Virus record (IMG/VR): IMGVR_UViG_3300032050_000004
Location: 158,070-222,069 of that record
Reading direction: 5' to 3' (one strand)
DNA length: 64,000 nt
In this document: positions 3,911 to 36,951 of the stretch, piece after piece
How positions within the stretch are numbered: position 1 is the stretch's first letter
How the letters are laid out: each line of letters opens with the position of its first letter
Notes under the pieces: model-generated
Databases searched by the model: none
The model's input: the letters and a program-made list of their open reading frames with translations, nothing else
What the model was told of the DNA's origin: nothing
Position numbers and translations under genes: made by a program

Positions 3911-4432
3911 TTGTTAGATAAATTAAATATAGTGAAAGATAATCATTTAATGTGTGGTTTTGAATCAATTAAGGATTTGGTAAAAAGTGCTTTTGGATTA
4001 GACCATATTTATACAAACACAGTAATCGCTTCAATAGGAGCTATATCAACATTTATAACATCATATATATATGATGATGCTCAAGCAATTTATGTATTAC
4101 TCGGGTTTATAGCTTTTGATTCTTTGACAGGAATTTTAAAAGCTTTTAAACAAAATATATTTTCTTCAGCCAAATTACCCAGAATATTAGTTATTATGGT
4201 ATTGTATGTTTCTTTGTTGAGTTTGGGTTGGAATTTGGCAAAAGTTGACGATATATTTAGTTGGTTACCGGGAACACTTTATTTTGGTTTTATTAGCACA
4301 CTTGTAATTTCTATCATAGAAAACCTTCATGCTTTAAATGTAATTTCTGATGAAATATATAATCACATGAAGAAAAAAATGAAATTAGTCCAAGAAATAT
4401 TTTTTGGGAAAGGTAAGTCAAGAAACGATTAA
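3911..4432 (+). CDS. Phage holin (toxin-secretion/phage lysis holin family-like); start may be ATG 3950
   Basis: Several TM segments with FIAFDSLTGILKAFK...SSAKL and LVISIIENL motifs typical of this holin family. Confidence 0.65.
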   Translation: MLDKLNIVKDNHLMCGFESIKDLVKSAFGLDHIYTNTVIASIGAISTFITSYIYDDAQAIYVLLGFIAFDSLTGILKAFKQNIFSSAKLPRILVIMVLYVSLLSLGWNLAKVDDIFSWLPGTLYFGFISTLVISIIENLHALNVISDEIYNHMKKKMKLVQEIFFGKGKSRND

Positions 4433-7400
4433 ACAATTATTTTTCTGAATGGGGCAGAATTAGTGAAATTCAAGAACCCTTTTTTATTTTTAAAGAACTT
4501 TGTTACATAAAAACAATTTGTCTCTAAAATCAATCTCATCCTTTCATATAGATCATTGTTCATGGTAACCTTTTTGGTTGCAGCACCATCAGAAATTGTC
4601 AAAACATAATAATTTGATCCATCCCATTGAGCAGTTTTTTTCTCAATATGATTTATCATAAAATAATAAAATTTATTTGTATCCTCAAAATTCAAGGCTG
4701 AATCTATATTTAGACCAGTTGCTTTCATGAATTGTTCTTTTACACTCGCTATTTTATTTAATAAATTTAAATCTAATGAACAAATTTCTAGAAACTGATC
4801 ATATCTAATCTGATCTGTAGTCTTTTCAAAATCTTTATTTTTAAATTTTCTTTCAGCAACCGTCAAAACTGTATCGACATCGTTTGTGAACATATCTAAT
4901 TGGTTGCTTTGCTTATATTTTATCTGTTTCATTTCTATGAGTTCTTCTCTAGAATTTGACCAATCATCAAACAAACCAGCTTTCAAACATGATTCAAAAT
5001 TTGTTTTATTGAATTTAGACCATTTTGTTGAGAAAAACATTTCTTTATCCATTAATTCGACTCTGTTATTCTTTAATTCTTTGAAAGCTATTTCTCCCAT
5101 ACCATTTATTGAAGAATAACCCATAGCAATAATTTTATCTTCAATAATCGTCCAATCCCAGTTTGATTTTCTATTAGGAGGAACAATTTTTATTCCTTTC
5201 GACATTGCAGATAAAAGTGCTGAATTTAACCATGCTTTATTTTTTTCATCATCATTACCAGTTTTTGGATGATTTAGAAGAGCACAATAAAATTCAGTTG
5301 GATAATAATGTTTTAAAAATAATGTTTGTGCTGCAACATAGCTATAACTCAAACTGTGACTCAAATTAAATGAATAGCCAAGATATTTAATTAACCAAGA
5401 TTCAATTTTTTCAACGTCTTCTACAGACAAGCCTTTTGCAATCGCACCATCGATGAATTTTTTCCACAAATCCTTATAGGATTTGTAATTTTTATTATTT
5501 TCTTCATCATTTGATAACTCTTTTCCCTCTAATTTTTTTGATATTATCTTACCTGCACCATCCATTGCCTTACGCAAATTATCCCCTTCACCTAAACTCA
5601 TTCCTCCTATTTGATTAGCAATAAACATCAATTGTTCTTGATATATTAAAACTCCATTTGTTTTTTCTAACAGTGGAGCTAATATACTATGGGCATAAGT
5701 TCTTTTTTCAGGCTCAAATTTATTTTTAATAAATTCTTCATGAGCCTTAATTCCCATCGGTCCGGGACGATACAATGCGTTTGCTGCTACTAATTCGTCA
5801 AAATTTTCGCATTTCATAGATTTTAACATTGCATTCATACCTTCAGACTCAAACTGAAAAATACCTTGATTAAAACCTAATCTCAATTCATCATACAGAT
5901 TTTTATCTTCTAAATTAACATAATCTACTTCTAATTGGACCTTATCACCTATTTCATCTCCATGTCTTTCTCTTATATATTTTATGCAATCTTTTATAAC
6001 GTTTAATGTTTCTAATTTTAAACGATCAAGTTTTAATATACCAATAGAAGAAAGGTCTTTTGCATTTCCTGATTCTTGGAAACCAGAAACTATTTGACCT
6101 TTGCAAATATTAACTGGCATACTCTCCCAAATTGGGCCCGGTGTTATTACAATTCCAGCAGCATGTTTTCCAAGATTTCTTAATTGACCTTGTAATTTTA
6201 ATGTATTATCAATAACCTCTTTATTGTGTGGATCTAAAATCCACTTCCTTACCCTATCGCTACACATAGGATCATTTGGCCAATGTATTAACCATTCCTC
6301 AAGCGAAGAATCCCATTTTGTTGGCATTTCCTTAGTGACGGCAAAAATATCACTTTCGAATCCAGTGTCTTGACCTAGAGCTCTAGCAACATCTTTTATA
6401 CAACCTTTTTCATTGAAGGTTCCAAACGTAATTACTGGAACTACACGTTCTTTTCCATATTTTCCATAAAGAAAATTTAATGTCTTTTCATCTGTGCCAG
6501 CTTCAAAATCTGTATCAATATCCGGCATAGATTTTCTCTCTGGATTTAAGAATCTTTCAAAATATAAATCAAATCTTACAGGATCAATTTTTGTAATATC
6601 TAAACACCATGATAATAAGCTTCCGGCAGCGGAACCACGTCCCGGACCTGTTGCTATATCATTATCTTTACAAAATCTAATTAGCTCCCAAACGACCAAA
6701 AAATAATCAAGTACTTTTTTATCTTCAATAACTTTTAACTCATAATCTAGACGGTCATAATAAATTTTTTCTTTTTCGTAATCAATTTTTACAACACCCG
6801 TCTTTTCGTAATCCTTTAATTTTTGTTTTAATTTAGCTTTAGATAGTTTTTGAATTATTTCTATTGTGTTATCTGTTTTAAAATATTTTATAACATCAGG
6901 TGTAGGTTCATATTTAGGGTACTTATCATCGGTCATTTCAAATTCAAAATTGCATTTTTCAGCGACCTTCAAAGTATTATCTAAACAAAAGTCTACATAG
7001 TGTTCAGGATAATTAAAACCTAAACGTTTATTCATTTCGTGAAAATTCTCGAAATTTGTATAATATAATTCTCTTGCTTGTAATGAAAACGCTCTTCCTA
7101 CTGGTTGACTTTGGTTTATTGCAATTAAAATATCCTGTAATCTATTATCTTCCGGCATAGCATAATGAACGTCCCCAGTTAAAATTGGTTGTAAATCATG
7201 CTTTTTAATCATTTTTAAAATGAATTTATTATAGATTTTTTGTTCTTCAATTTCATTAAATTGAAGTTCTGCATAAAAATCATCACCAAATTCTCTTTTA
7301 AATAATAAAATTCTTTCTTCAGCTTCTTTTTCTTTACCCTCAGATATCAATCTGGCAAATTTTGATGCCATACAGGAGGATGTAACAATTAATCCTTTTT

Positions 7401-7839
7401 TATTTTCAATTAACCACTCAGTAGTAATTCTTCCTTTATAATAATATCCTTCAGTAAATGATCTATAAATTAATTTATTTAAATTTACATACCCTTCCTG
7501 ATTTTTTATAATAATAGATTGATGAGTATTTTTGGCTGAATTATCAATACTTTCAGCTTCTTCTTTCGGTATATTTTTATCTAAATTATCATTTAAATAA
7601 GCTTCCATACCGAGAATAGGTTTTATTCCAGCAGATTTACACTTTTGAAAATGTGTCAACCAACCAGAAGCATTACCATGGTCCAATATTGTGATTGCTG
7701 GATGATTAAATTCTTTAGCTAATTTTACGTAATTAGCTGATTTTGAAGCTCCATCTAAAGTTGAAAAATCAGTGTGTAAATGTAAATGCACCATCGGACG
7801 GTGCTTGCATCTTGGATTATTACAACTGCAATTTGGCAT
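4429..7839 (-). CDS. dnaE: DNA polymerase III alpha subunit (family C)
   Basis: PHP motif HLHLHTDFSTLDG, GPGRGSAAGSL, FERFLNPER, MPDIDTDF, GKHAAG, LYRPGPM, YSFNLSHS; no intein seen. Confidence 0.97.
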   Translation of the reverse strand: MPNCSCNNPRCKHRPMVHLHLHTDFSTLDGASKSANYVKLAKEFNHPAITILDHGNASGWLTHFQKCKSAGIKPILGMEAYLNDNLDKNIPKEEAESIDNSAKNTHQSIIIKNQEGYVNLNKLIYRSFTEGYYYKGRITTEWLIENKKGLIVTSSCMASKFARLISEGKEKEAEERILLFKREFGDDFYAELQFNEIEEQKIYNKFILKMIKKHDLQPILTGDVHYAMPEDNRLQDILIAINQSQPVGRAFSLQARELYYTNFENFHEMNKRLGFNYPEHYVDFCLDNTLKVAEKCNFEFEMTDDKYPKYEPTPDVIKYFKTDNTIEIIQKLSKAKLKQKLKDYEKTGVVKIDYEKEKIYYDRLDYELKVIEDKKVLDYFLVVWELIRFCKDNDIATGPGRGSAAGSLLSWCLDITKIDPVRFDLYFERFLNPERKSMPDIDTDFEAGTDEKTLNFLYGKYGKERVVPVITFGTFNEKGCIKDVARALGQDTGFESDIFAVTKEMPTKWDSSLEEWLIHWPNDPMCSDRVRKWILDPHNKEVIDNTLKLQGQLRNLGKHAAGIVITPGPIWESMPVNICKGQIVSGFQESGNAKDLSSIGILKLDRLKLETLNVIKDCIKYIRERHGDEIGDKVQLEVDYVNLEDKNLYDELRLGFNQGIFQFESEGMNAMLKSMKCENFDELVAANALYRPGPMGIKAHEEFIKNKFEPEKRTYAHSILAPLLEKTNGVLIYQEQLMFIANQIGGMSLGEGDNLRKAMDGAGKIISKKLEGKELSNDEENNKNYKSYKDLWKKFIDGAIAKGLSVEDVEKIESWLIKYLGYSFNLSHSLSYSYVAAQTLFLKHYYPTEFYCALLNHPKTGNDDEKNKAWLNSALLSAMSKGIKIVPPNRKSNWDWTIIEDKIIAMGYSSINGMGEIAFKELKNNRVELMDKEMFFSTKWSKFNKTNFESCLKAGLFDDWSNSREELIEMKQIKYKQSNQLDMFTNDVDTVLTVAERKFKNKDFEKTTDQIRYDQFLEICSLDLNLLNKIASVKEQFMKATGLNIDSALNFEDTNKFYYFMINHIEKKTAQWDGSNYYVLTISDGAATKKVTMNNDLYERMRLILETNCFYVTKFFKNKKGFLNFTNSAPFRKIIV

Positions 7840-9941: not shown

Positions 9942-12900
9942 ATGTCAGATATTTCAAATCAACTTATTAAAGATTCATTTAATTATGTATTACAATCTGA
10001 TTTGGATACTGGTATTGTTTATAGAATTGGTGGTGACATTCCAGAAAACCCTCAATTTACATCAGGACTGACGGTTTCAAATGGTTTTAAATTCGAAGAT
10101 TCCCCACAAGATGGTTATTTTCTTAAATCTGATGCTTTCGGAAATGCTTCTTGGGCATTAGTAACAGGATCAGGTACTTCTGGATCAGCTGGTTCGTCAG
10201 GAAGAAACGGAAGTTCAGGCTCATCAGGAAGTTCTGGAATAAATGGTAGTTCAGGTTCTTCGGGCATAAATGGTAGCTCTGGTTCGTCTGGAACGTCTGG
10301 TACAAATGGAAGTTCCGGGAGTCGAGGTTCTAGCGGTAGTTCTGGTTCTTCTGGCTCATCTGGAACATCAGGTATCAATGGTCTTGATGGTTCTAATAGC
10401 TTAAGATGGTTTTATAGAACTGATCTAGAAGCTCCAAATAACCCCGGAAACCAAAATTTTATACTAAATGAAGTCAAGTTTAGTACTGTAACTAGAATTA
10501 GCATAAGTACACTAGATATAAACTCGAATGATTCATATGATTGGTTAGAGACTATTGATGTTTTAAAAAGGGTTACAGGAAACTTAGTTTATTTTAAAAT
10601 TACGAATGTCACAAATCCATCAAATTATGGATTATACACAATTGCTGGCTCTACAGATCATGGAACTTATTTTGATTTTGATCTTACTTTAATAAATAGC
10701 GATTTAAGTACCATACAAGGAGAACAATTCTCTATATCATATGTATTTAATGGATTAAATGGTACTTCAGGAACTTCGGGGGAATCTGGAAGTTCTGGAT
10801 CTTCTGGTGTATCAGGAACTGATGGTTCAGCTGGAACTTCTGGTACTTCTGGTACTTCTGGCAACAACGGAAATGATGGAACATCTGGTTCATCAGGAAT
10901 AAATGGTAGCTCTGGAATAAACGGAAGTTCTGGTATAAATGGTAGTTCTGGAGTTAATGGTAGTTCAGGTTCATCAGGAGGAGCAGGATTAAGTGGAAGT
11001 TCTGGATCATCTGGTGCAAACGGAAGTTCTGGTTCATCAGGTATTTCTGGAGAATCTGGTTCATCTGGTAGTTCTGGTACATCAGGATCATCTGGTACAG
11101 GTTTTACTGCCATTCAAAGTCCTGCTAATTATAGAGTATTAGTATCTGATAACACAACAGATACTGCAATTGCTCAATCTGGACTTACATATGATGGTCA
11201 ACAATTATATATTTCTGGCAATACATTTATTACAGGCACAATTTCAGCTACAACTTTTTATAGTTTAGTAGGTGATATAGAAAATTATGTCACAGTTGGT
11301 CTCAGTGGTAGTAATGTAGATTTTAATTCAATAAAATTAGCAGTCGATAGTATTACTGGAGCAACTGAAGATAATCCATGGGAAGTTAGAGTTTATCCGG
11401 GCTTGTACTACGAAGATCCAATTATTATGAAATCTTGGATCACAGTAAGAGGAAGCAATAGTACTGCAACAATTGTAGAAGCAAGTAATTCTGCGAATAC
11501 AGTTTTTTTCATGGCAGATCAATCTATGATTTCAGACATGCAAATTCAAGGTTCTACTGCTTCTGGAACATCTGCTATCATATATTCTTCTTCGACCACT
11601 CCACAATTAAATGCAATTTCATATGTAGAAAACGTCAGATTCGGCGAAAACTACACACACGCTAAAACAGTCGGTACTGGTGGTGGAAATTGCATAATGC
11701 AATGTTCTAATGTAAAATATGGTGGTTATCCTTTTACTATCGGCTTTGTAGTAACAAATGACGGTACTGGTATTGGCAGAATGCAACTAAGAAACGTCAC
11801 TTCAACTAATGGTGGTGTAACTACTACAACAGGATTGATTTTTGCAAAAGCTGATGCACCAAGCTGTGCTTTTATTGTTAATGGTTGTTTATTAACAAAA
11901 GCTGTCGGTGCTGCAGCTGGTACCGGTTTCTGGGTTGAAAATGGAGCTTCTTTAAGATTGACTGCTGTAAATTTCCAAAGATGGGCTACAGCTATTTATG
12001 CTCCTAATACAGGATCATCCCCTAGTATATATGGAAGTGCTTTAAATTTTGAAAATAACACAAAGGATATAATTGTAGAACATCCTTCAGCAACTGGACA
12101 TATAGATGGAGCTGATACATTTTTAAAAACCGAAATACCAATTAATGCTCCTTTATACGAAGTTAATCAAGACCCAAAAAGAATTATAGTTGCAAAAAAA
12201 GGAGGAGATTTTTCATCTATTAAATCTGCTGTAGATTGGATTACAGGAAGTTCTAGCAGTAATAGGTTTGTGGTTTCTGTCGGTCCGGGTGAGTTTTTTG
12301 AAAATGAAATTGATCTTACATCTAAACCTTATGTCAGTATTGTAGGTAGCAACATACAAACCACACAAATTTTTCCTAATTCTACTTCACAGCATATTAT
12401 AAAATTAGGAATAAATAATGAAATATCTTTTTTAAGTTTATCAGGTGCTGGTTCTAGTTATTCTGCTATATATGTTGACGATATAGGGGATTTTGCACAA
12501 GCTCACAAAATTTCTGTTTACGATTGTGATATAGGTGTATGGGTAAAATCTTCCACCCAAGACACAAAATTCTATGGTGAATACATGGATTTTAATGGAG
12601 ATTTTACCTATGGAGTTCGTGTAGATGCGACAAATTCATTTTCGGCATTAGCCAATATGGAAAACTATTATCTTTTTCCAACCTATGATAATGTGATTGG
12701 TAATAGTGCAGATGGTTTAGGTGCAAGACTTAATTTATACACAGGTGAATTTGAAGGTGCTCAATTGACTGGTTCTACAGCAATAAAACTTTCAGATCAA
12801 GCTGAACTTGAAGCTGGCAATTTAGATATTCAAGATTGGAATAAGTCGTTTGAAATTCCTAATTCCGGTGGTGGTCCAGTTGCTAGGATTGTAGGTTCAA

Positions 12901-14207
12901 TGATTCACAATTCTATCACCTACGATATTGAAATTCTAAACCCTGCTGCATCCTTTAGATATCAAGGTATATCTGATCATACTAAAATATATAATGTAAG
13001 CAATAATGTGTTTTGGAATTTTCTTGATGATGTAGATGGGGAAAATGATATTACAAGAAAAATATCAGTTACATTTTCAGATGGAACACATACGGATGCT
13101 TCAACATTAATTTTTCAAAGTAGTTCAATGGGCCTTCTAAACGGAGGTACAATTACAATAGTTAGTGGTTTAACAATAAACACCACATCAGGGTTTGGAT
13201 ATGTAGCAGATCAAATTGATAATAGTATTATAAAAAGATATGATTGGAATAATAATCAAATAACATTGTCTGCAAATACAAATAATTATATTTATATTTC
13301 CAATAATGGTTCTTTAGTCGCTAATTCTGGATTACCTGATCCATTCTATAGTATAATAATGGGTAGAGTTGTTACAAATTCAACAGGCATTGAATTAATT
13401 GATCAATCACCATATAATGCACAACATACAGCAAATTTATTATCTTCATTTAACAGGCAAGCACTTGGCCCAGTATTTTCAACTGGTTCAATTGTAACTA
13501 CTGGAACTACAGCATTTACATTGGATGTTAGTACAGGAAACTATTGGTTATCAGAAAATAATTTTTTACCTACAGGTGGAACATCAATAAATTTTACTCA
13601 GTATTGGAATAATGGATCAGGATTCACAACAAGTGCTACAACATATGTTAATAGTAGTCAATTCAATCCAAATCAAAATTCACTATCTTCTCTTACAAGC
13701 TCTTATTACACAAAACATACTTTGTATGTAGTTGGCGATGGAATAAATGAAGAATATTTTTTAGTTCTTGGTCAAAACGAGTATGCTACTTTAATTGAAA
13801 CAGAAGACGCACCTTTACCTATACCTCCCGATTTTTTTACAGATGGTGTAGTTTCTATAGCATCAATTTATATTAAAGATGGTGAATCAGGAATTGTTCA
13901 AATTGAAGATATAAGACCTGTAATTGGTTTTAAATCCAGTGGTGTAAATGCCACATCAGTTCATGGAAATCTTTTAGGTCTTACATCAGATGATCATCAA
14001 CAATACATTTTAGTTGATGGTGGTAGGCAGATGACAGGAGATCTTGGAATTGGTGGCTTTGATATATATAATATAAATCAAATAACTTCTACTGGCATTA
14101 CAACAAACACACTTAATGTAGCTAATTTATCTAATGATGAATCTCTAACGAGATATGTTGTTGTAGATGTTTCTGGAAACACATTTTATAAAAACGAAGG
14201 TCAGTAA
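9942..14207 (+). CDS. Large tail-fibre/tailspike-like protein with Gly-X-Y (Ser/Thr) repeats and two beta-helix-like domains; stops at an in-frame TAA
   Basis: GSS/GTS/GIN triplet blocks; two beta-helix cap motifs (DFNSIKLAVDSI...VYPGLY and DFSSIKSAVDWI...VGPGEF). Confidence 0.8.
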   Translation: MSDISNQLIKDSFNYVLQSDLDTGIVYRIGGDIPENPQFTSGLTVSNGFKFEDSPQDGYFLKSDAFGNASWALVTGSGTSGSAGSSGRNGSSGSSGSSGINGSSGSSGINGSSGSSGTSGTNGSSGSRGSSGSSGSSGSSGTSGINGLDGSNSLRWFYRTDLEAPNNPGNQNFILNEVKFSTVTRISISTLDINSNDSYDWLETIDVLKRVTGNLVYFKITNVTNPSNYGLYTIAGSTDHGTYFDFDLTLINSDLSTIQGEQFSISYVFNGLNGTSGTSGESGSSGSSGVSGTDGSAGTSGTSGTSGNNGNDGTSGSSGINGSSGINGSSGINGSSGVNGSSGSSGGAGLSGSSGSSGANGSSGSSGISGESGSSGSSGTSGSSGTGFTAIQSPANYRVLVSDNTTDTAIAQSGLTYDGQQLYISGNTFITGTISATTFYSLVGDIENYVTVGLSGSNVDFNSIKLAVDSITGATEDNPWEVRVYPGLYYEDPIIMKSWITVRGSNSTATIVEASNSANTVFFMADQSMISDMQIQGSTASGTSAIIYSSSTTPQLNAISYVENVRFGENYTHAKTVGTGGGNCIMQCSNVKYGGYPFTIGFVVTNDGTGIGRMQLRNVTSTNGGVTTTTGLIFAKADAPSCAFIVNGCLLTKAVGAAAGTGFWVENGASLRLTAVNFQRWATAIYAPNTGSSPSIYGSALNFENNTKDIIVEHPSATGHIDGADTFLKTEIPINAPLYEVNQDPKRIIVAKKGGDFSSIKSAVDWITGSSSSNRFVVSVGPGEFFENEIDLTSKPYVSIVGSNIQTTQIFPNSTSQHIIKLGINNEISFLSLSGAGSSYSAIYVDDIGDFAQAHKISVYDCDIGVWVKSSTQDTKFYGEYMDFNGDFTYGVRVDATNSFSALANMENYYLFPTYDNVIGNSADGLGARLNLYTGEFEGAQLTGSTAIKLSDQAELEAGNLDIQDWNKSFEIPNSGGGPVARIVGSMIHNSITYDIEILNPAASFRYQGISDHTKIYNVSNNVFWNFLDDVDGENDITRKISVTFSDGTHTDASTLIFQSSSMGLLNGGTITIVSGLTINTTSGFGYVADQIDNSIIKRYDWNNNQITLSANTNNYIYISNNGSLVANSGLPDPFYSIIMGRVVTNSTGIELIDQSPYNAQHTANLLSSFNRQALGPVFSTGSIVTTGTTAFTLDVSTGNYWLSENNFLPTGGTSINFTQYWNNGSGFTTSATTYVNSSQFNPNQNSLSSLTSSYYTKHTLYVVGDGINEEYFLVLGQNEYATLIETEDAPLPIPPDFFTDGVVSIASIYIKDGESGIVQIEDIRPVIGFKSSGVNATSVHGNLLGLTSDDHQQYILVDGGRQMTGDLGIGGFDIYNINQITSTGITTNTLNVANLSNDESLTRYVVVDVSGNTFYKNEGQ
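10168..10390 (+). repeat. Gly-Ser-Ser/Thr collagen-like coding repeat block 1
   Basis: Degenerate 9-nt periodic ggt-tca-tct/gga-agt-tct; boundaries approximate. Confidence 0.9.
10760..11100 (+). repeat. Gly-Ser-Ser/Thr collagen-like coding repeat block 2
   Basis: Same triplet repeat; boundaries approximate. Confidence 0.9.
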
Positions 14208-21716: not shown

Positions 21717-23336
21717 ATGTCTGAATTATTAAACAGCGGACAAGTTGGTATGACCGTATTACGCAACTTGTCTGAACAAAGAAAACAAATCGTTAAGAAC
21801 TGGGAAAACTCAGGTCTTCTCGAAGGTATTGCCGGTCAAAAAAAAGCTAACATCGCTCAATTGTTAGAGAACCAAGCATCTCACATGCTTAATGAGGTAA
21901 CTCTAGATAGTTCTGCAGGTCGTTTCGACACTGTTGCATTTCCGATGGTAAGACGTATCTTCTCAAGATTACTTGCTTCTGAAATCGTATCAGTTCAACC
22001 TCTTGCTTTACCTTCTGGTTTGTTATTCTATATGGACGCTCAAGTATCTTCTGATAAAGTAGCTCCTTATTCTATAGCAAATTCTGGTGGTGGTTCTGGT
22101 CCTACATTCCCTAACAAATCTGCTTACGAGCGTTTCTATGACAATCGTGGATATGATGCATCTTGGGGTGCTGCAACTCAGCGTGTAGGTTCTGCAATCA
22201 GCATCGGTTCTGGTTCTACTACAACTGGTTTGATTGCTACGGCTGTAACATTAAGCTCTAATTTTGATGTAACTCTTAATCAGTCTTACACTTCTTTAGT
22301 ACTTTCTGCTAATACAGCTATTGCTTACAACGGTGTGGCTTTATTTGCTGCAGGTCAAACAGGTGTTACATTCTACTCTAATTTACAGACTTATGGTGCT
22401 GAATTAGTACAGAGTAACACTCCGGGTAACGTGAACAACATCTATAACATTGTTATCGATTTACGTCCTGCTCCAACTTCTACTGCTGCTTATTCATGGG
22501 TACAATCTGGATTAACTGCAGGTGTTGGTGGTGTAGGTGCTGGTATCATCCTTACTCCGATGTTCTACACTTACAACACGATTGAGGCTAGTCCAAACAT
22601 GTCTGAATTAACTCTTCGTTTCTCTTCTGTAACTGTAAACTCAATTACAAGAAAAATGAGAGCACATTGGACACCTGAATTAGCTCAAGATTTAGAAGCA
22701 TACCACTCAATTGATGCTGAGGCTGAATTGACAGCTTTATTGTCAGAAGAAGTTGCTGCTGAAATCGATCGTGAAATCATCCGTGATCTTGTTATCGGTG
22801 CTATGTTCGAAGCTCGTTGGGATTACCAAGGCTTACGTGACAACGTAAACTTCTTCGGTACTCAGAAAGACTGGAACCAAACTCTTATCACTCGTATCAA
22901 CGAAATTTCTGCCCAGATCCACAAAGCTACCCTTCGTGGTGGTGCTAACTGGGTTATCTGTTCTGCAGAAGCTGGTGCGATCTTCGATGATCTTGAGTAC
23001 TTCCATGTAGATTCTTCTGCATCACCTGAGACTGAAAAGTATAACTTAGGTATGGAAAAAATCGGTAACTTAGGTAACCGTTATGTAGTGTACAAAGATC
23101 CTTACATGCCTGCTAACATCGTGTTGGTTGGACACAAAGGTAATACCTTCCTTGAGGCTGGTTACGTGTACGCTCCTTACATTCCTCTTCAATTAACTCA
23201 GACGATCTACGATCCGAATGACTTTACACCTCGTAAAGGTATCATGACTCGTTATGCGAAGAAGATGATCAACAACCGTTTCTATGGTGTGATCTACCTT
23301 GACAATCTTAACACTTATACTCAGGTATATAGCTAA
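21717..23336 (+). CDS. Major capsid protein (T4 gp23-like)
   Basis: NIAQLLENQA, FPMVRRIF, VSVQP, RKMRAHWTPELAQDLEAYHSIDAEAELT, YAPYIPL, PRKGIMTRYA; strong high-expression codon bias. Confidence 0.97.
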   Translation: MSELLNSGQVGMTVLRNLSEQRKQIVKNWENSGLLEGIAGQKKANIAQLLENQASHMLNEVTLDSSAGRFDTVAFPMVRRIFSRLLASEIVSVQPLALPSGLLFYMDAQVSSDKVAPYSIANSGGGSGPTFPNKSAYERFYDNRGYDASWGAATQRVGSAISIGSGSTTTGLIATAVTLSSNFDVTLNQSYTSLVLSANTAIAYNGVALFAAGQTGVTFYSNLQTYGAELVQSNTPGNVNNIYNIVIDLRPAPTSTAAYSWVQSGLTAGVGGVGAGIILTPMFYTYNTIEASPNMSELTLRFSSVTVNSITRKMRAHWTPELAQDLEAYHSIDAEAELTALLSEEVAAEIDREIIRDLVIGAMFEARWDYQGLRDNVNFFGTQKDWNQTLITRINEISAQIHKATLRGGANWVICSAEAGAIFDDLEYFHVDSSASPETEKYNLGMEKIGNLGNRYVVYKDPYMPANIVLVGHKGNTFLEAGYVYAPYIPLQLTQTIYDPNDFTPRKGIMTRYAKKMINNRFYGVIYLDNLNTYTQVYS

Positions 23337-27518: not shown

Positions 27519-28691
27519 ATGGAAATAAGAGAATTAATAAAAAAAGTAATTAAAGAGTCTTTTTTAACAGAAAATGAAGTTAAAAGAATAGATTTTAGCT
27601 ACCCTTTACCTGATGATTTAAATAAATTGAAGAATTATTTCGATGAGAATAATTTTGAACTTTTTGTAGTAGGTGGAGCCGTGCGTGATATGATCTTAGG
27701 TAAGGAACCTAAAGACATAGATTTAGTATCTGATGCTACTCCTGATGACGTAAAAAGGATTTTACCAGATGAATATAGAATAATTCCCAAAGGAGAAGCT
27801 TTTGGTATCCTTCAAATAATTACTCCAGAAGGTGGTGATTACGAGATTGCTCGTTATCGTGAGGATATTGGAAAAAAAGATGGAAGAAGACCAGATTCGG
27901 TCAAATTTTCTACTATTGATTCAGATGCTTTAAGAAGGGATTTAACAATTAATGCTCTATATTACGATATAAATAAAAATCAAATTATAGATTTTGTTAA
28001 TGGTTATGAAGATATTCTCAAAAGAAATATTAAAACTGTTGGTAAAGCAGAAGATAGATTTGAAGAGGATCGATTAAGAATATTGAGAGCATTTAGATTT
28101 GCAGCTAGATTTAATTCAAACTTAGATCAGGATATAATAGAGGCTTTAAGAAAAAATAATTCTCTAAAAGGGGTATCTGAAGAGAGAATTAGAGATGAAT
28201 TCCTTAAAGGTATAAAAAGTGCTCAATCTGTTGTAAAATTCCTTACCGATTTAGAAAATTATGGATTACTAAAACAAATTTTAGATGATTTGAATTATAG
28301 TCAATCTGAATTCGTAGAATCAAAAGATTATATCGTGTTATTGGCTAATTTACTTAAAAATAATCCAGTTCATAAAATTCAAACTATTCTTAATAATCTT
28401 AAATATACAACTGATGAAATAAGAAAAATTATTTTCCTTGTTTTGTTTTTAAATTTCGATCCTGAATCTGTATATAATTTTAAAGTAAAAGAAAATGTTT
28501 CGAAAATATCTCCAGAAGAATTAAAGGAATTTGCCAGAATAAATTCTATAAATTCAAATATGGTAGATAAATTCATAGATTTTAAATTATCTGTTTCAGG
28601 GGATGAACTTTTACAGAAGGGATTCAAGGGAGCATCATTAGGAAAAGAAAAAGAAAGATTAGAGACTGTTAACTTCCTTGATACTCTTTAG
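27519..28691 (+). CDS. cca: tRNA nucleotidyltransferase (class II CCA-adding enzyme / polyA-polymerase family) with N-terminal extension
   Basis: VGGAVRD...KDIDL, GRRPD loop, RRDLTINA, EDRLRILRAFRF. Confidence 0.9.
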   Translation: MEIRELIKKVIKESFLTENEVKRIDFSYPLPDDLNKLKNYFDENNFELFVVGGAVRDMILGKEPKDIDLVSDATPDDVKRILPDEYRIIPKGEAFGILQIITPEGGDYEIARYREDIGKKDGRRPDSVKFSTIDSDALRRDLTINALYYDINKNQIIDFVNGYEDILKRNIKTVGKAEDRFEEDRLRILRAFRFAARFNSNLDQDIIEALRKNNSLKGVSEERIRDEFLKGIKSAQSVVKFLTDLENYGLLKQILDDLNYSQSEFVESKDYIVLLANLLKNNPVHKIQTILNNLKYTTDEIRKIIFLVLFLNFDPESVYNFKVKENVSKISPEELKEFARINSINSNMVDKFIDFKLSVSGDELLQKGFKGASLGKEKERLETVNFLDTL

Positions 28692-34991: not shown

Positions 34992-35024
34992 AAAAAACCC
35001 TAGAGAATCTCTAGGGGTTTTTTT
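34992..35024. terminator. Bidirectional intrinsic terminator closing the tRNA cluster
   Basis: AAAAAACCCTAGAGA-AT-CTCTAGGGGTTTTTT between convergent units. Confidence 0.85.
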
Positions 35025-35025
35025 G

Positions 35026-35099
35026 TAGTCCCGAGGCGATTCGAACGCCTGACCGTCTGCTTAGAAGGCAGATGCTCTATCCAGCTGAGCTACAGGACC
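35026..35099 (-). tRNA. trnR: tRNA-Arg(UCU), no encoded CCA
   Basis: GGTCCTGTAGCTCAGCTGGATAGAGCATCTGC-CTTCTAA-GCAGACGGTCAGGCGTTCGAATCGCCTCGGGACTA. Confidence 0.95.
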
Positions 35100-35105
35100 A
35101 ATTAG

Positions 35106-35177
35106 TAGCGGGAAGAGGATTCGAACCTCTGACTTCCAGATTATGAGTCTGGTGACCTACCTCTGGTCCATCCCGCA
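35106..35177 (-). tRNA. trnM: tRNA with CAU anticodon (Met/fMet/Ile2 identity unresolved), no encoded CCA
   Basis: TGCGGGA...CCAGA-CTCATAA-TCTGG...GGTTCGAATCC...TCCCGCTA; U1-U72 mismatch. Confidence 0.88.
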
Positions 35178-35194
35178 GTATTTTTTTCTTATTA

Positions 35195-35224
35195 CAAAAA
35201 TAGTAATAAAAAATTAAAAACAAA
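35195..35224 (-). promoter_or_regulatory. Bacteroidota sigma-A-type promoter upstream of tRNA-CAU
   Basis: TTTG (35221-35224), 18 nt, TATTTTTG (35195-35202). Confidence 0.55.
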
Positions 35225-35249
35225 TTTTATAATAAAATTATAAGATTTG

Positions 35250-35323
35250 CTCTCCTGACTGGGCTCGAACCAGTGACCCATTGATTAACAGTCAATTGCT
35301 CTGACCTACTGAGCTACAGGAGA
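35250..35323 (-). tRNA. trnN: tRNA-Asn(GUU), no encoded CCA
   Basis: TCTCCTGTAGCTCAGTAGGTCAGAGCAATTGA-CTGTTAA-TCAATGGGTCACTGGTTCGAGCCCAGTCAGGAGAG. Confidence 0.95.
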
Positions 35324-35389
35324 TTTTTTTAATTTATGTAGCCGGGGCGGGAATCGAACCCGCAAGACCTTTAGGGGTCAATGGATTTT

Positions 35390-36098
35390 CTTACTACTAT
35401 AGTTTTCACTACCCTTTCGGTTTGTAGTCTGGACTATACCTTCACCATATTTATCAACTTAGGTGTTCCGTGTCTAGTCTCTACACACGCCCAGTTATAA
35501 TTATTATAACTTGCTTGGCTCGGTATTCCCATTTTACAGGGTTCACCGAATTTACGGAATTCTACTCTCGAAATTTCTAACGAGGCACTCTATTTTTATT
35601 TTTTCCACGATAAGTAAAAGTAAAAGCGTGACAGTTTGGACATAAAATTTTTAAATTTTCTATTCTATTATCATCATTTATACCATTAATATGCTCTAAT
35701 TCAAGTGGAATTTCTTTATTCATCCAATGAGTATTTAAACAAGATTCGCATTTTTTTTCTTTAATACCTTCTTTAAATAATCTCAATTTCAATTTATAAG
35801 TTTGAGTATAAGGAGAATTTTCTATTAGAATTTCTTCTATTTTAAATTCTTTACCAAACTTTCTAAATTTCTCTCCTTGATTCCAAGCAGATCCTGTAAA
35901 ATGAGAAATATCAATATTAAATTTCTTGAATTTTAGTTTCAACGTTTTATAATTACCACCAACTGGTAATATTTTTAGTTGCCTACAAACTTCAGCTATT
36001 GATAAACTATTTTTTACAATTACTTCTAATTCTTCTTTCGTATATTTATATTTCATGAATATAAATAGTAAGAAAAAAGTTAAACGTGGTTATAGTCA
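35390..36098 (-). mobile_element. Group I intron (709 nt) with HNH ORF in the P1 loop
   Basis: IGS GAG 35588-35590; P3 TTCCGT/ACGGAA; P AAATTCGGTGAA; Q AATACCGAG; R GTAGAGACTA; S GAAGGTATAGTCC; terminal G at 35390. Confidence 0.92.
35577..36056 (-). CDS. Intron-encoded HNH homing endonuclease
   Basis: CESC...LELEHINGINDDNRIENLKILCPNCH; last codons overlap the IGS/P2; TATTTAT at 36061-36067. Confidence 0.9.
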   Translation of the reverse strand: MKYKYTKEELEVIVKNSLSIAEVCRQLKILPVGGNYKTLKLKFKKFNIDISHFTGSAWNQGEKFRKFGKEFKIEEILIENSPYTQTYKLKLRLFKEGIKEKKCESCLNTHWMNKEIPLELEHINGINDDNRIENLKILCPNCHAFTFTYRGKNKNRVPR

Positions 36099-36155
36099 AA
36101 GTCCATCGTGTTTGCCTATTTCACCACCCGGCCATTAATTCAAAGAACAACGATA

Positions 36156-36186
36156 CAAATATATATAAAATATATATAAAAACAAA
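36156..36186 (-). promoter_or_regulatory. Bacteroidota sigma-A-type promoter for the tRNA cluster
   Basis: TTTG (36183-36186), 19 nt, TATATTTG (36156-36163). Confidence 0.7.
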
Positions 36187-36211
36187 AGAGCTGGAATTAT
36201 CCAGCTCTTTT
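36184..36211 (-). terminator. Intrinsic terminator downstream of the OMP gene
   Basis: AAAAGAGCTGGA/TCCAGCTCTTTT hairpin. Confidence 0.8.
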
Positions 36212-36240: not shown

Positions 36241-36951
36241 TTAGAATGACATACTTACAATAAAATTTACGGGTGCTTGAGAGATACCGGGTGCATCCAA
36301 AACATTTTTATAAGAAGGATTTACATATAAACCTGTTTTAACTTTAGAAGTCCAAGAATCAGAAATTTTAAGATCTCTAGTTCCATTAATTCCGATATGA
36401 GTGATACCTGCATCAGTTCTCAAATTTACACCAGAAGCATCAGTAACATAACCTGCTGTTACTTCTAAGTTTTCTTTTACTTTATAACCTGCTTCGAAAT
36501 AGATACCTGCTGCATTATCGGCACCTGCTTCACTTTGATAAGCGGTATAAGCTACTAAACCATAAACATCTTCATTCTTATATTTAAGAGATGTTTCGAT
36601 AAAGTGCGAAGTGTTTTTTCCATAGTCCCAATAATCATTGGAAACACCAGCGTAGTAGTAATCTTTAACAGTCAAAGACAAATTCTTTTTAGTAAAAGTC
36701 ATATAACTATTAAGATTATTACCAAAACCTTCGGTTGCATTAAGTGCTACGGTAGCTTCAGTTCCGAGGGTAAACCAGTCACAGAATTTGTAGTGCATAT
36801 CACCTTCTACAGTTGGTGCTACAGAGAAAGCTACACCACGATTCCAGTGTTGTGTTGCGAGTCCGAAACCAGTGTGTAAACCTTTTTCTTCTTGAGCATA
36901 AGCTCCGATAGCAGTAAATACTGCAAGACATAAGACAATTAGTTTTTTCAT
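36241..36951 (-). CDS. Outer-membrane beta-barrel protein (Bacteroidota type)
   Basis: Signal peptide ending AYA-Q, amphipathic alternating strands, C-terminal Phe (NFIVSMSF). Confidence 0.75.
   Translation of the reverse strand: MKKLIVLCLAVFTAIGAYAQEEKGLHTGFGLATQHWNRGVAFSVAPTVEGDMHYKFCDWFTLGTEATVALNATEGFGNNLNSYMTFTKKNLSLTVKDYYYAGVSNDYWDYGKNTSHFIETSLKYKNEDVYGLVAYTAYQSEAGADNAAGIYFEAGYKVKENLEVTAGYVTDASGVNLRTDAGITHIGINGTRDLKISDSWTSKVKTGLYVNPSYKNVLDAPGISQAPVNFIVSMSF

Follow-up and report, generated by a model that had tools for sequence, protein, structure and literature searches.

The window, by which we mean the whole 64,000-nt stretch of DNA that was analyzed, is recognizable as phage DNA by its Gp23-type capsid protein, phage DnaE-type polymerase, collagen-like tail fibre and CCA-adding enzyme. 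On its minus strand is a tRNA-Leu(UAA) gene that is interrupted by a group I intron, and the P1 loop of this intron contains a gene for an HNH protein. The features of the locus are as follows.

27519 to 28691, plus strand: phage CCA-adding enzyme (phrog_2244, E = 2e-55; Pfam PolyA_pol, E = 4e-35)
34998 to 35016: second terminator-like hairpin, at the end of the tRNA unit
35025 to 35323, minus strand: tRNA-Asn(GUU), tRNA-Met(CAU) and tRNA-Arg(UCU), downstream of tRNA-Leu and apparently in one transcription unit with it
35339 to 35389, minus strand: tRNA-Leu(UAA) 3' exon, from A35 A36 to A73 (ARAGORN)
35390 to 36098, minus strand: group I intron, 709 nt, first base U36098, terminal G35390
35577 to 36056, minus strand: HNH homing-endonuclease gene, 159 amino acids (phrog_10822, E = 3e-49)
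36099 to 36133, minus strand: tRNA-Leu(UAA) 5' exon, positions 1 to 34 (ARAGORN with introns allowed; fold of the joined exons)
36156 to 36163, minus strand: TATATTTG, a putative -7 promoter motif 22 nt upstream of the tRNA (weak evidence)
36184 to 36211, either strand: bidirectional terminator-like hairpin, upstream of the tRNA cluster

The split tRNA-Leu(UAA) gene and its setting

When introns are allowed, ARAGORN finds a tRNA-Leu(taa) on the minus strand in which 709 nt of intron follow the first base of the anticodon. Its output, i(36,709), and the anticodon position that it gives (35 in the sequence) place the insertion between U34 and A35. A shift of the junction by one base would cost the intron its terminal G. 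Joining of the exons (36133 to 36099 and 35389 to 35339) gives a class II cloverleaf of 86 nt that has A73 and lacks an encoded CCA, in which the 5' exon supplies the acceptor strand, the D arm, the 5' half of the anticodon stem and C32 U33 U34, and the 3' exon supplies A35 A36, the 3' half of the anticodon stem, the long variable arm, the T arm, the other acceptor strand and A73. The identical sequence is present in 12 fetched loci, representing eight viral contigs that each come from a different metagenome, which rules out a chance match or an assembly artefact. A first-pass annotation, made without database searches, had described two tRNA halves 709 nt apart that form a Leu(UAA) cloverleaf cut after U34, and had named the element a phage tRNA-Leu(UAA) with a group I intron carrying an HNH gene in its P1 loop; all of its coordinates and every part of that name held.

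Some ARAGORN calls at other loci were misleading. Split "tRNA-Phe(gaa)" calls (L176, L178 and L180) were rejected as tRNA-Leu(UAA) misregistered by one base, and several "Tyr(ata)," "Stop(tta)" and "Lys(ttt)" calls at pattern-matched loci are likely the same artefact.

The phage CCA-adding enzyme is relevant here because the tRNA gene does not encode its own CCA. The leucine codons UUA and UUG together make up 74% of the leucine codons of this phage. The promoter assignment is weak: the Bacteroidota -7 promoter motif is TAnnTTTG, and a match to it has a ~4% chance of occurring in this A/T-rich 50-nt spacer. A search by megablast with 24 kb of the window against GenBank phages found no relative. 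The earlier assignment to a Bacteroidota phage has only indirect support, namely, the TAnnTTTG match upstream of the tRNA cluster and the fact that, among bacterial copies of the ribozyme, the six closest are all in Bacteroidota chromosomal genes.

Detection and fold of the ribozyme

The Rfam group I intron model, RF00028, matches positions 35628 to 35408 (model positions 1 to 253) at 50.3 bits, where the gathering score is 50 (E = 1.4e-11). This match is borderline and appears only when a short stretch (~1 kb) is scanned. A scan of the whole 64-kb window against Rfam at the gathering threshold reported only three plain tRNAs and missed the intron, and a 6.3-kb scan of two relatives (L001 and L002) gave no match. 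The loss of RF00028 in larger scans is due to the speed filters of Infernal and not to the score; L001, which lacks an ORF, scores 56.6 bits against the same model. The first-pass annotation had named a covariance-model search as a check, and RF00028 is passed, if narrowly. A profile built only from ORF-less relatives, with the window excluded, matches end to end at 35590 to 35390 with an E value of 3.5e-42. The structural elements of the intron are listed below.

36097 to 36101, minus strand: P1 5' strand, C32 U33 U34 followed across the splice site by U G; partner 35588 to 35592
36085 to 36089 and 35605 to 35609, minus strand: possible P1-extension helix, CCACG/CGUGG (tentative, read from the sequence)
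35588 to 35592, minus strand: internal guide sequence and P1 3' strand, U A G A G, within the final HNH codons
35567 to 35584, minus strand: P2, a CUCG/CGAG stem with U·U mismatches and an A-GAAA-U cap (7 of 7 family P2 pairs covary)
35554 to 35559, minus strand: P3 5' strand, UUCCGU; partner 35466 to 35471, with 6 of 6 pairs formed in the window
35520 to 35549, minus strand: P4-P5 domain, with P4 at 35544 to 35549 and 35520 to 35525, and P5 at 35539 to 35540 and 35529 to 35530
35485 to 35519, minus strand: P6, with an 8-bp A/U hairpin at 35493 to 35511
35475 to 35481, minus strand: P7 5' strand, G-(A bulge)-GACUA; partner 35431 to 35436
35443 to 35465, minus strand: P8 hairpin (RNAalifold, pair counts)
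35393 to 35428, minus strand: 3' domain, closing helix ACUAC/GUAGU at 35424 to 35428 and 35393 to 35397

Covariation was assessed in a set of 49 sequences with RNAalifold and pair counts. Without guidance, RNAalifold recovers the tRNA stems together with P1 to P6, P8 and P9. When P7 is added, 97.8% of cells are paired across the 49 sequences, compared with 32 to 42% for slid partners. Compensatory double changes occur at 53 of the 76 pairs, and the observed values are reached by none of 500 shuffles. All six pairs of P3 show compensatory changes across the family. P7, the guanosine-binding helix, which forms a pseudoknot with P3, is 100% paired in the 49 sequences, and its last pair swaps between U-A (27 sequences) and A-U (22 sequences). 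Covariation is also seen in the 3' domain, where the closing helix encloses two GAAA-capped hairpins (35413 to 35420 and 35399 to 35412) and AAG, with the terminal G at 35390, comes next: the closing helix covaries (C-G in 30 sequences, U-A in 19), as do 5 of 5 pairs of the second hairpin. The 5' splice site follows U36099, which pairs with G35590 of the guide GAG (35590 to 35588) as a U·G wobble. This wobble is present in 48 of 48 family sequences, while the pair adjacent to it covaries (A-U in 35, G-U in 8 and U-G in 3). The helix set, with P2, no P5abc and a short P9 domain, fits subgroup IC3.

In the window itself, core helices P3 to P8, including the P3/P7 pseudoknot, and the conserved joining segments are all intact. 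The weak points lie at the 5' end: P1 has only 5 bp and closes across ~500 nt, and P2, with 4 bp plus U·U mismatches, is below the family norm, possibly as a result of its double duty as coding sequence. The putative P1-extension helix would close the ORF-bearing loop, and its window version has no covariation support; bacterial members with the ORF in P1 have analogous closing helices of 8 to 10 bp. No obvious P10 was found in the window intron.

These features raise the question of whether the intron has ceased to splice, leaving the split tRNA-Leu as a pseudogene. In favor of this reading are the long P1 loop, the short P1, the weakened P2 and the borderline Rfam score. Against it, the core helices and joining segments are intact, the exon cloverleaf is flawless, and the tRNA reads the codons that dominate leucine usage in this phage. 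Because about half of the ORF-bearing relatives share the P1 architecture, the overlap of ORF and guide included, we regard that architecture as a maintained design. We consider the pseudogene reading very unlikely, and we retain the reading of the element as a splicing intron, with the caveat that splicing activity is inferred and rests on no experimental or transcript evidence.

The HNH gene, the intron family and signs of mobility

The HNH ORF lies between the 5' splice site and the guide GAG. Its stop codon, UAG, is in the P2 loop, and its final codons (R V P R stop) span both the guide and the 5' P2 strand. Its placement in P1 is also supported by homology, since the extra DNA relative to ORF-less relatives is located at profile position ~39, just past the splice site. 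Both the 159-amino-acid HNH ORF in the P1 loop and the overlap of its last codons with the guide and P2, as claimed at first pass, were upheld. The GC content of the ORF is 24.4%, versus 38.6% for the ribozyme.

The ORF is intact and its catalytic motif is complete. Residues C103, C106, H122, N134, C139, C142 and H143, which correspond to the catalytic His/Asn/His and the two CxxC zinc pairs of a beta-beta-alpha metal finger, are all present and are invariant or nearly so in 22 to 23 homologs. A predicted structure (pLDDT of 86.6) has strands at 119 to 122 and 135 to 138 and a helix at 140 to 143. Pfam scores are under the cutoffs (18.2 versus 24.8 for HNH_3, and 13.9 versus 21.4 for HNH), and a PDB sequence search with the protein gave only a spurious ribosomal-protein match. 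Since a Foldseek search with the predicted structure found nothing below an E value of 0.1, the closest solved homing endonuclease cannot be named. Selection on the gene is not measurable because all close copies are identical. Expression of the protein, cleavage by it and its target are inferred.

The element is one of many. At least 120 viral contigs have this intron at the same site, either without an ORF or with an HNH gene in P1 or in the P6 loop. So do at least 120 bacterial genomes, among them one cyanobacterium, and the phyla represented are many (Proteobacteria, Acidobacteriota, Bacteroidota, Planctomycetota, Bdellovibrionota and others). It is also present at this site, unannotated, in the cultured jumbo phage Atu_ph07, where the tRNA-Leu(UAA) gene is at about 112890 to 113251. 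The intron of the cyanobacterium, a Phormidesmis (L294), is 66% identical to the window core over 190 nt, with all conserved blocks in common; the cyanobacterial homology rests on this one sequence, which matches the same 30-base pattern. Based on this distribution of one intron at one site across phages and bacteria, a cyanobacterium among them, we conclude that the window intron belongs to the classical trnL(UAA) group I intron family. The fifty unique ORF-less phage relatives are 191 to 291 nt long. The window intron, at 709 nt and with its ORF, is not of this small, ORF-less kind, but without the P1 insert its ribozyme is of normal size. The first-pass annotation had cautioned that many such ORF-containing introns might already be catalogued in phages. 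This caution applies, since many ORF-bearing trnL introns are in phage sequence databases, yet they are unannotated. S-CRM01 has an HNH homolog among its tRNA calls but no match to this intron family.

Several observations form a comparative signature of mobility. ORF-less, P1-ORF, P6-ORF, truncated, frameshifted (as in L143, below) and decayed-ORF relatives all occur, and the core tree implies 21 or more switches between presence and absence of the ORF. Intron similarity is decoupled from exon similarity: ribozyme cores that are 93 to 96% identical are found in tRNA bodies that are only 58 to 62% identical. The window HNH protein is sister to free-standing HNH genes, which lie immediately 5' of intron-less tRNA-Leu(UAA) genes; the anticodon stems of these tRNAs (ACGCA/TGCGT) differ from the intron-bearing type, and free-standing and intron-embedded forms interleave in the tree. 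A survey for intron-less alleles found no match in viral contigs to the exact 26-nt exon junction, and hence no empty-site allele of this phage lineage. Elsewhere, 109 intron-less tRNA-Leu(UAA) genes with an identical 17-nt anticodon arm are present in other viral contigs. The earlier claim that the intron is mobile is therefore supported by comparative evidence only, without experiment.

An alternative explanation is that the HNH gene is a recently fixed passenger heading toward decay, in an intron that is effectively immobile in this lineage and is kept only because its splicing is good enough for it to be neutral. This is consistent with the truncated or missing ORFs in many relatives, with L143, an identical intron whose HNH gene is frameshifted by a ~103-nt deletion, with the failure to find an intron-less allele of the lineage to invade, and with the very low GC content of the ORF. 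However, the window ORF is full length, retains all of the family-invariant catalytic and zinc residues, and is identical in 12 fetched loci from eight contigs. We consider the passenger explanation unlikely.

Proposed mechanism, known systems and implications

We favor the reading that the window contains a phage version of the trnL(UAA) group I intron, one that has gained an HNH gene in its P1 loop, and we assign this reading a probability of ~0.85. Its anatomy, its family membership, the covariation-backed fold, the intact catalytic motif and the comparative mobility signature are shown; the target of the HNH protein and homing are, like splicing and HNH expression, inferred. In the mechanism that we propose, the Leu-Asn-Met-Arg tRNA cluster would be transcribed as a single unit, and in the precursor the tRNA halves would be held together through the anticodon stem. 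Exon bases C32-U33-U34 would pair with the guide GAG, placing the U·G wobble at the splice site, and the 3' part of the intron (200 nt) would fold into the P2-P9 ribozyme. Free guanosine would attack after U34, and G35390 would then dock in P7 for exon ligation. The spliced tRNA would be finished by the phage CCA-adding enzyme and would read UUA and UUG. The HNH protein, made from the precursor or from the excised intron, would cut or nick an intron-less trnL(UAA) near the anticodon in a co-infecting genome, and repair from the intron-bearing copy would convert the cut allele, which is homing.

A less likely alternative is that the ribozyme splices but that the HNH protein is chiefly an inter-genome weapon against trnL(UAA) of co-infecting phages or the host. 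Its purpose would be to exclude competitors or to favor flanking phage markers, with the intron serving as safe harbor and self-immunity. Marker exclusion is known for intron-encoded and free-standing endonucleases of T-even phages, and SegB acts in the T4 tRNA region (PMC2330249). This reading is favored by the free-standing HNH genes that adjoin uninterrupted tRNA-Leu(UAA) genes with different anticodon stems, by the interleaving of the two forms and by the many intron-less targets in other phages. On the other hand, it does not exclude homing, as both follow from the same cleavage, for which there are no data. The earlier suggestion of possible cleavage of the host gene loses strength, because the chromosomal trnL(UAA) of the candidate Bacteroidota host lineages already contains a related intron, which would protect it from being cut.

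The mobile-intron reading can be compared with several known systems. Classical trnL(UAA) introns are ORF-less and were described from cyanobacteria and plastids (PMC4476775). The window copy resembles them in its gene, its site between U34 and A35, its small P2-P9 ribozyme, the short exon pairing in P1 and exons held together by the anticodon stem, and differs in being phage-borne with an HNH gene in P1. The Synechocystis tRNA-fMet intron, which encodes I-Ssp6803I (Bonocora and Shub 2001, cited in PMC3984707), is likewise a group I intron of a tRNA anticodon loop with a homing endonuclease for the anticodon region, but it is in a different tRNA, is cellular rather than phage-borne and encodes an endonuclease of another family; I-Ssp6803I belongs to the PD-(D/E)xK family. 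The Azoarcus tRNA-Ile(CAU) IC3 intron is a small anticodon-loop ribozyme of similar size and helix set, also with GAAA-capped peripheral hairpins, but it has a different tRNA and insertion context and no ORF. Neither of these two introns was compared with ours at the sequence level.

Among phages, I-HmuI and I-HmuII of SPO1/SP82, I-TevIII of RB3 and I-PfoP3I of cyanophage Pf-WMP3 also combine a self-splicing intron with an HNH enzyme encoded in a peripheral loop, whose nick or double-strand break starts homing. In contrast, their hosts are protein genes (DNA polymerase, nrdB) and they are of other subgroups, e.g., IA2. F-CphI at cyanophage psbA and SegB in the T4 tRNA cluster are, like the free-standing relatives of our HNH gene, located beside their targets. 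They differ in that the target here is a tRNA gene and in that the enzyme is HNH and not GIY-YIG, as SegB is. The states found here (free-standing 5' of intron-less trnL(UAA), in P1 and in P6) are those predicted by the Bonocora and Shub 2009 model of a pathway from free-standing to intron-encoded endonucleases (summarized in PMC3984707), with the direction of transition unresolved.

According to a 2014 review, phages have many tRNA genes, yet every phage intron known at that time was in a protein gene (PMC3984707). In the literature that we searched, we found no report of group I introns in phage tRNA genes: the Jug phage paper describes introns only in protein genes and does not mention tRNA; a stop-codon recoding preprint, a group I intron database paper and a jumbo-phage overview report no phage tRNA introns; the word "intron" is absent from the huge-phage paper; and the Cluster J paper describes tRNA-Leu as an attachment site and reports no phage tRNA intron. 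Group I introns are not modeled by tRNAscan-SE (PMC8450103). Phage tRNA introns are missed because tRNAscan-SE has no such model and because the filters of Infernal drop the family at genome scale, and phage tRNA-Leu(UAA) genes are therefore probably undercounted.

The published rule that phage group I introns reside only in protein-coding genes (PMC3984707) is contradicted by this locus. The trnL(UAA) intron has been at the center of an old debate between ancient origin and lateral transfer, and since phage members of the family are interleaved with members from at least six bacterial phyla, the hypothesis that phages are vectors becomes directly testable. The occurrence of one HNH lineage in free-standing, P1 and P6 forms is an unusually complete series on the colonization of introns by endonucleases. 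A bolder reading, toward which we lean slightly less than against, is that phage tRNA arrays (trnL(UAA) plus Thr and Met tRNAs) constitute a large reservoir of group I introns that has been overlooked, that phages spread the trnL(UAA) intron across bacterial phyla, and that the HNH lineage is a trnL(UAA)-anticodon specialist cycling among its free-standing, P1-embedded and P6-embedded states. If true, this would provide a natural series for the assembly of mobile introns. Atu_ph07, together with Agrobacterium tumefaciens C58, offers a cultured system for testing the splicing of a phage tRNA intron.

The split tRNA-Leu(UAA) gene and its ribozyme

With long introns allowed, ARAGORN calls a tRNA-Leu(taa) gene that is interrupted by a 709-nt intron after the first base of the anticodon. 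The features of this locus are as follows.

36133-35339, minus strand: split tRNA-Leu(taa) gene
36098-35390, minus strand: group I intron, first base U, last base G
36056-35577, minus strand: HNH ORF, 159 aa (PHROG phrog_10822, "HNH endonuclease," E 3e-49)
36184-36211 and 34998-35016: bidirectional terminator-like hairpins, flanking the tRNA cluster on both sides

The joined exons 36133-36099 and 35389-35339 form a class II cloverleaf of 86 nt, in which the variable arm is long and position 73 is A; CCA is not encoded. Since shifting the junction by one base loses the terminal G of the intron, the only consistent splice site lies between U34 and A35. Three ordinary tRNA genes, for Asn, Met, and Arg, line up with the split gene on the minus strand. 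The window has a G+C content of 30.9%. Across the 20 largest of its ORFs, 74% of leucine codons are UUA or UUG and 72% of arginine codons are AGA, which fits the presence of Leu(UAA) and Arg(UCU) tRNAs in the cluster; tRNA-Leu(UAA) should thus matter to the phage. A useful tRNA-Leu(UAA) requires that the intron be spliced; splicing itself is inferred, without experiment. Just upstream of the cluster, beyond a bidirectional terminator, is a minus-strand ORF of 236 aa (36241-36951); its product clearly begins with a signal peptide and matches nothing in Pfam or PHROG.

The first-pass annotation, made from sequence alone, had proposed a tRNA-Leu(UAA) gene split by a group I intron with an HNH homing endonuclease in the P1 loop. 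Its coordinates and elements all held when examined by ARAGORN, the Rfam group I model, PHROG, and reading of the sequence, and its interpretation is correct, although splicing, HNH activity, the target site, and homing remain inferences without experiment. The Rfam check that it suggested gives a match at 35628-35408 when 1.1 kb is scanned (50.3 bits, E 1.4e-11), just above the gathering score of 50. The same model misses the intron in a scan of the whole 64-kb window. It finds the trnL(UAA) intron family in very short searches only (50.3 bits in 1.1 kb and 56.6 bits in 351 nt) and misses it in 6-kb scans of two other fetched loci, L001 and L002, which indicates that routine annotation will overlook introns of this family.

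Relatives were sought with a pattern that joins three conserved blocks, namely the 5' strand of P7, its 3' strand, and the 3' end of the intron together with the first bases of exon 2. This pattern matched at least 120 viral contigs, and ARAGORN found 128 intron-split tRNA-Leu(UAA) genes in the fetched viral loci. Eighty-eight of the split genes, including that of the window, are unique; 50 of these have short, ORF-less introns (191 to 291 nt) and 38 have long introns (600 to 926 nt). An alignment of 48 ORF-less precursors with the ribozyme part of the window's intron was folded by RNAalifold without guidance. The prediction contains the stems of the tRNA, including an anticodon stem that pairs across the intron, as well as P1, P2, P3, P4, P5, P6, P8, and the 3' helices. 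Once the P7 pseudoknot is included, standard pairs make up 97.8% of cells, compared with 32 to 42% when the partners are slid by 1 to 3 columns, and 53 of 76 pairs (P7 included) have changes on both sides. The observed values were reached in 0 of 500 shuffles. All six P3 pairs covary, and P7 is 100% paired, with a swap between U-A (27) and A-U (22) at one pair. The window retains every helix of the family fold, including the P7 pseudoknot. A profile of the ORF-less core, from which the window's own sequence was left out, has a full-length match at 35590-35390 (E 3.5e-42) and detects no second copy of the intron in the window. There are two weak points: P2 is weaker in the window than is the norm for the family, and no P10 is evident in its intron.

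The HNH gene and its free-standing relatives

Long introns break the ORF-less profile either at position ~39 to 45, which is the P1 loop just past the splice site, or at position ~122 to 131, which is the P6 loop. The intron of the window is of the P1 class, as are about half of the ORF-bearing phage introns. Its P1 has 5 bp (C32-G35588, U33-A35589, U34.G35590, U36098-A35591, and G36097.U35592). The HNH frame ends in AGA GUG CCU CGU UAG, spanning the guide sequence and the P2 5' strand, with the stop codon in the P2 loop. The same overlap is present in other P1-class members, so it is a design that has been maintained. A 5-bp helix (36085-36089 with 35605-35609) may tentatively be proposed to close the P1 loop of the window; bacterial P1-class members have clear closing helices of 8 to 10 bp.

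Pfam HNH models score below their cutoffs on the window ORF. The protein has all of the residues conserved among its homologs: C103, C106, W111, E119, H122, G125, N134, C139, P140, H143, and T146 are invariant in 22 to 23 homologs, and C142 is nearly so. Among them are both CxxC pairs for zinc and the catalytic His, Asn, and His of HNH enzymes. The structure is predicted with confidence (mean pLDDT, 86.6): a flexible linker connects a module of three helices at the N terminus to a beta-beta-alpha core at the C terminus. No significant match to a solved structure was found, and the weak matches, to HNH nucleases and helix-turn-helix domains, agree with the annotation but prove nothing.

Other introns of the family differ in content. 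A second, unrelated HNH type, with an N-terminal HH.DGN..NN motif and a C-terminal Cys-rich region, occurs mostly at or near P1 in viral loci L056, L089, L097, and L098 and in L247, a 3-kb contig binned as a Woesearchaeota archaeon that is probably mis-binned phage or bacterial DNA. Some long introns (~650 to 950 nt), in viral loci L067, L073, L084, and L092 and among high-GC bacterial P6-class members (L193, L196, L204, L210, L212, L250, L251, L267, and L291), have no ORF of 50 to 60 aa or more in the standard code. These could be decayed endonuclease genes or, in some phages, genes in a recoded genetic code.

The closest nonidentical relatives of the window HNH protein (55 to 62% identity) are encoded by free-standing genes that are not intron borne. 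Each is followed on its own strand by an uninterrupted tRNA-Leu(UAA) gene, which either starts 6 to 7 nt beyond the end of the HNH gene or overlaps it by 10 to 39 nt, and no ribozyme profile match lies near them. Genes of the family in this arrangement are found in viral contigs L130 to L141, L160, L179, and L181, around locus positions 2000 to 2570; in L130, the last codons and stop codon of the HNH ORF are within the tRNA acceptor stem. The adjacent tRNAs keep the loop CUUAAAA and have different anticodon stems (e.g., ACGCA/TGCGT), which, by inference, might make them resistant to the neighboring enzyme. That the intron-bearing alleles uniformly have a GGA/UCC stem is due in part to the pattern used to search for them. 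In the protein tree, the free-standing L130 enzyme is the sister of the P1 enzyme of the window (support, 0.92), the P1 enzyme of L142 is nested in a free-standing clade (support, 1.0; 75% identity), one P6 enzyme groups with free-standing enzymes (support, 0.88), and a bacterial P1 enzyme pairs with a free-standing phage enzyme (support, 0.95). P1 and P6 enzymes interleave. This pattern would be expected if a trnL(UAA)-specific HNH lineage repeatedly shifts between free-standing and intron-embedded forms, a possibility that fits the pathway of mobile-intron origin summarized in PMC3984707.

Distribution in phages and bacteria and comparative evidence for mobility

The window is phage DNA, probably from a jumbo phage. 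It encodes the following.

21717-23336: Gp23-type major capsid protein
4429-7839, minus strand: phage DnaE-type polymerase
9942-14207: collagen-like tail fiber
27519-28691: CCA-adding enzyme

No close relative was found among GenBank phages. The intron and HNH sequence is identical in 12 fetched loci, representing eight viral contigs (one of 222 kb) from eight different metagenomes, which excludes an assembly error.

The three-block pattern, which comprises 30 bases, also matched at least 120 contigs of bacterial species-representative genomes, 94 of which have an intron-split tRNA-Leu(UAA) gene, several on complete chromosomes. These introns are 194 to 847 nt; 19 of the 94 are long, with the insert likewise in P1 or P6. 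Among the carriers are Alpha- and Gammaproteobacteria, Acidobacteriota, Bacteroidota, Planctomycetota, Bdellovibrionota, Bacilli, and one cyanobacterium, Phormidesmis (L294). The window core is 66% identical to that of L294 over 190 positions and has all conserved blocks in common with it, and we conclude that the window intron is a member of the classical trnL(UAA) family and not merely similar to it. In the core tree, phage and bacterial copies are clustered yet interleaved (14 label changes versus ~60 with shuffled labels), with the caveat that the metagenome-assembled "bacterial" contigs could include phage DNA and the "viral" ones cellular DNA. The nearest bacterial relatives of the window (~80% identity) are all Bacteroidota: Sediminibacterium, Chitinophagia, Flavobacterium, and two "Bacteroidetes" genomes. 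In these genomes (L189, L228, L265, L245, and L275) and one more Bacteroidota locus (L216), the split chromosomal gene always adjoins tRNA-Gly(GCC), and in L189 it has ordinary cellular neighbors (MazG, a family-2 glycosyltransferase, and a class-III aminotransferase). These relatives support, if only indirectly, an association of the phage with Bacteroidota. They also mean that in likely hosts the site is already occupied and thereby protected.

The evidence for mobility is comparative only. Truncated or absent ORFs are common among relatives, and ORF gain or loss requires at least 21 changes on the core tree. Locus L143 has the window's intron, with a 100% identical core, and a frameshifting deletion of ~103 nt in the HNH gene. 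Phage introns with cores 93 to 96% identical occupy tRNA bodies that are just 58 to 62% identical. Among ORF-less relatives, L093 is nearest to the window, with 86% of the core in common but no more than 67% of the exons. Other viral contigs contain at least 109 tRNA-Leu(UAA) genes that have the same 17-nt anticodon arm and no interruption, and so potential targets are common. An empty-site allele of the window's own tRNA was not found.

Introns also occur in other phage tRNAs. L113 (IMGVR_UViG_3300034013_000942) has three split tRNAs within 10 kb, Thr(GGU), Leu(UAA), and Met(CAU), at 112-384, 5359-5644, and 5850-6132, with introns of 198, 203, and 207 nt; all have clean cloverleaves and introns that end in G and match the same ribozyme profile. 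Two other loci have split tRNAs as well: Thr(CGU) in L107, where the intron is 611 nt, and a tRNA with anticodon CUA in L165, where it is 177 nt. About 20 of the 48 aligned ORF-less phage hosts are class-I-shaped tRNAs with anticodon UAA, no long variable arm, and a spliced length of ~72 nt (e.g., L011, L017, L019, L033, L039, L040, L044, and L045). Bacterial tRNA-Leu is normally class II, and the identity and charging of these tRNAs are therefore uncertain.

Earlier reports and significance

A 2014 review of bacterial group I introns stated that all phage introns then observed were in protein-coding genes, despite the many phage tRNA genes (PMC3984707). Our searches, limited to open-access literature, turned up no phage tRNA gene described as having a group I intron, although an earlier report elsewhere is not excluded, and no account of the trnL(UAA) intron from Bacteroidota or Acidobacteriota. 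Introns go unmentioned in the huge-phage paper, which relied on tRNAscan-SE, and the tRNAscan-SE 2.0 paper states that the tool was not designed for group I intron detection. The intron is unannotated in two GenBank huge-phage records, LR756501 (ORF-less) and LR756511 (HNH gene in P6). Atu_ph07, a cultured Agrobacterium jumbo phage (NC_042013.1), has a split tRNA-Leu(UAA) gene at ~112890-113251 on the minus strand, with a 278-nt group I intron between U34 and A35. RefSeq has no feature there, a short "hypothetical protein" CDS overlaps the 3' end of the unannotated tRNA, and no paper on this intron was found in the same literature. In Synechococcus phage S-CRM01 (NC_015569.1, 145010-145680), the HNH homolog g201 overlaps an annotated 75-nt "tRNA-Leu" with a poor fold, anticodon CAA, and mismatches, followed by an odd 90-nt "tRNA-Ile(tat)" call. 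The locus has no match to the trnL(UAA) intron family and may be another split tRNA with a different intervening sequence.

The first-pass annotation had cautioned that many identical ORF-containing trnL introns already catalogued in phages would reduce novelty, and this caution applies: trnL(UAA) introns, including ORF-bearing ones, are numerous in viral contigs, although they lack annotation. The kind of element is already known, and the window is one ordinary member of a large, overlooked set. Four aspects appear not to have been described before: the occurrence in phage tRNA genes, an HNH gene carried in P1 or P6, the wide distribution, and the link to free-standing HNH genes. The window element itself is not very unique; the wider phenomenon is of real interest for research on mobile introns and phage tRNAs.
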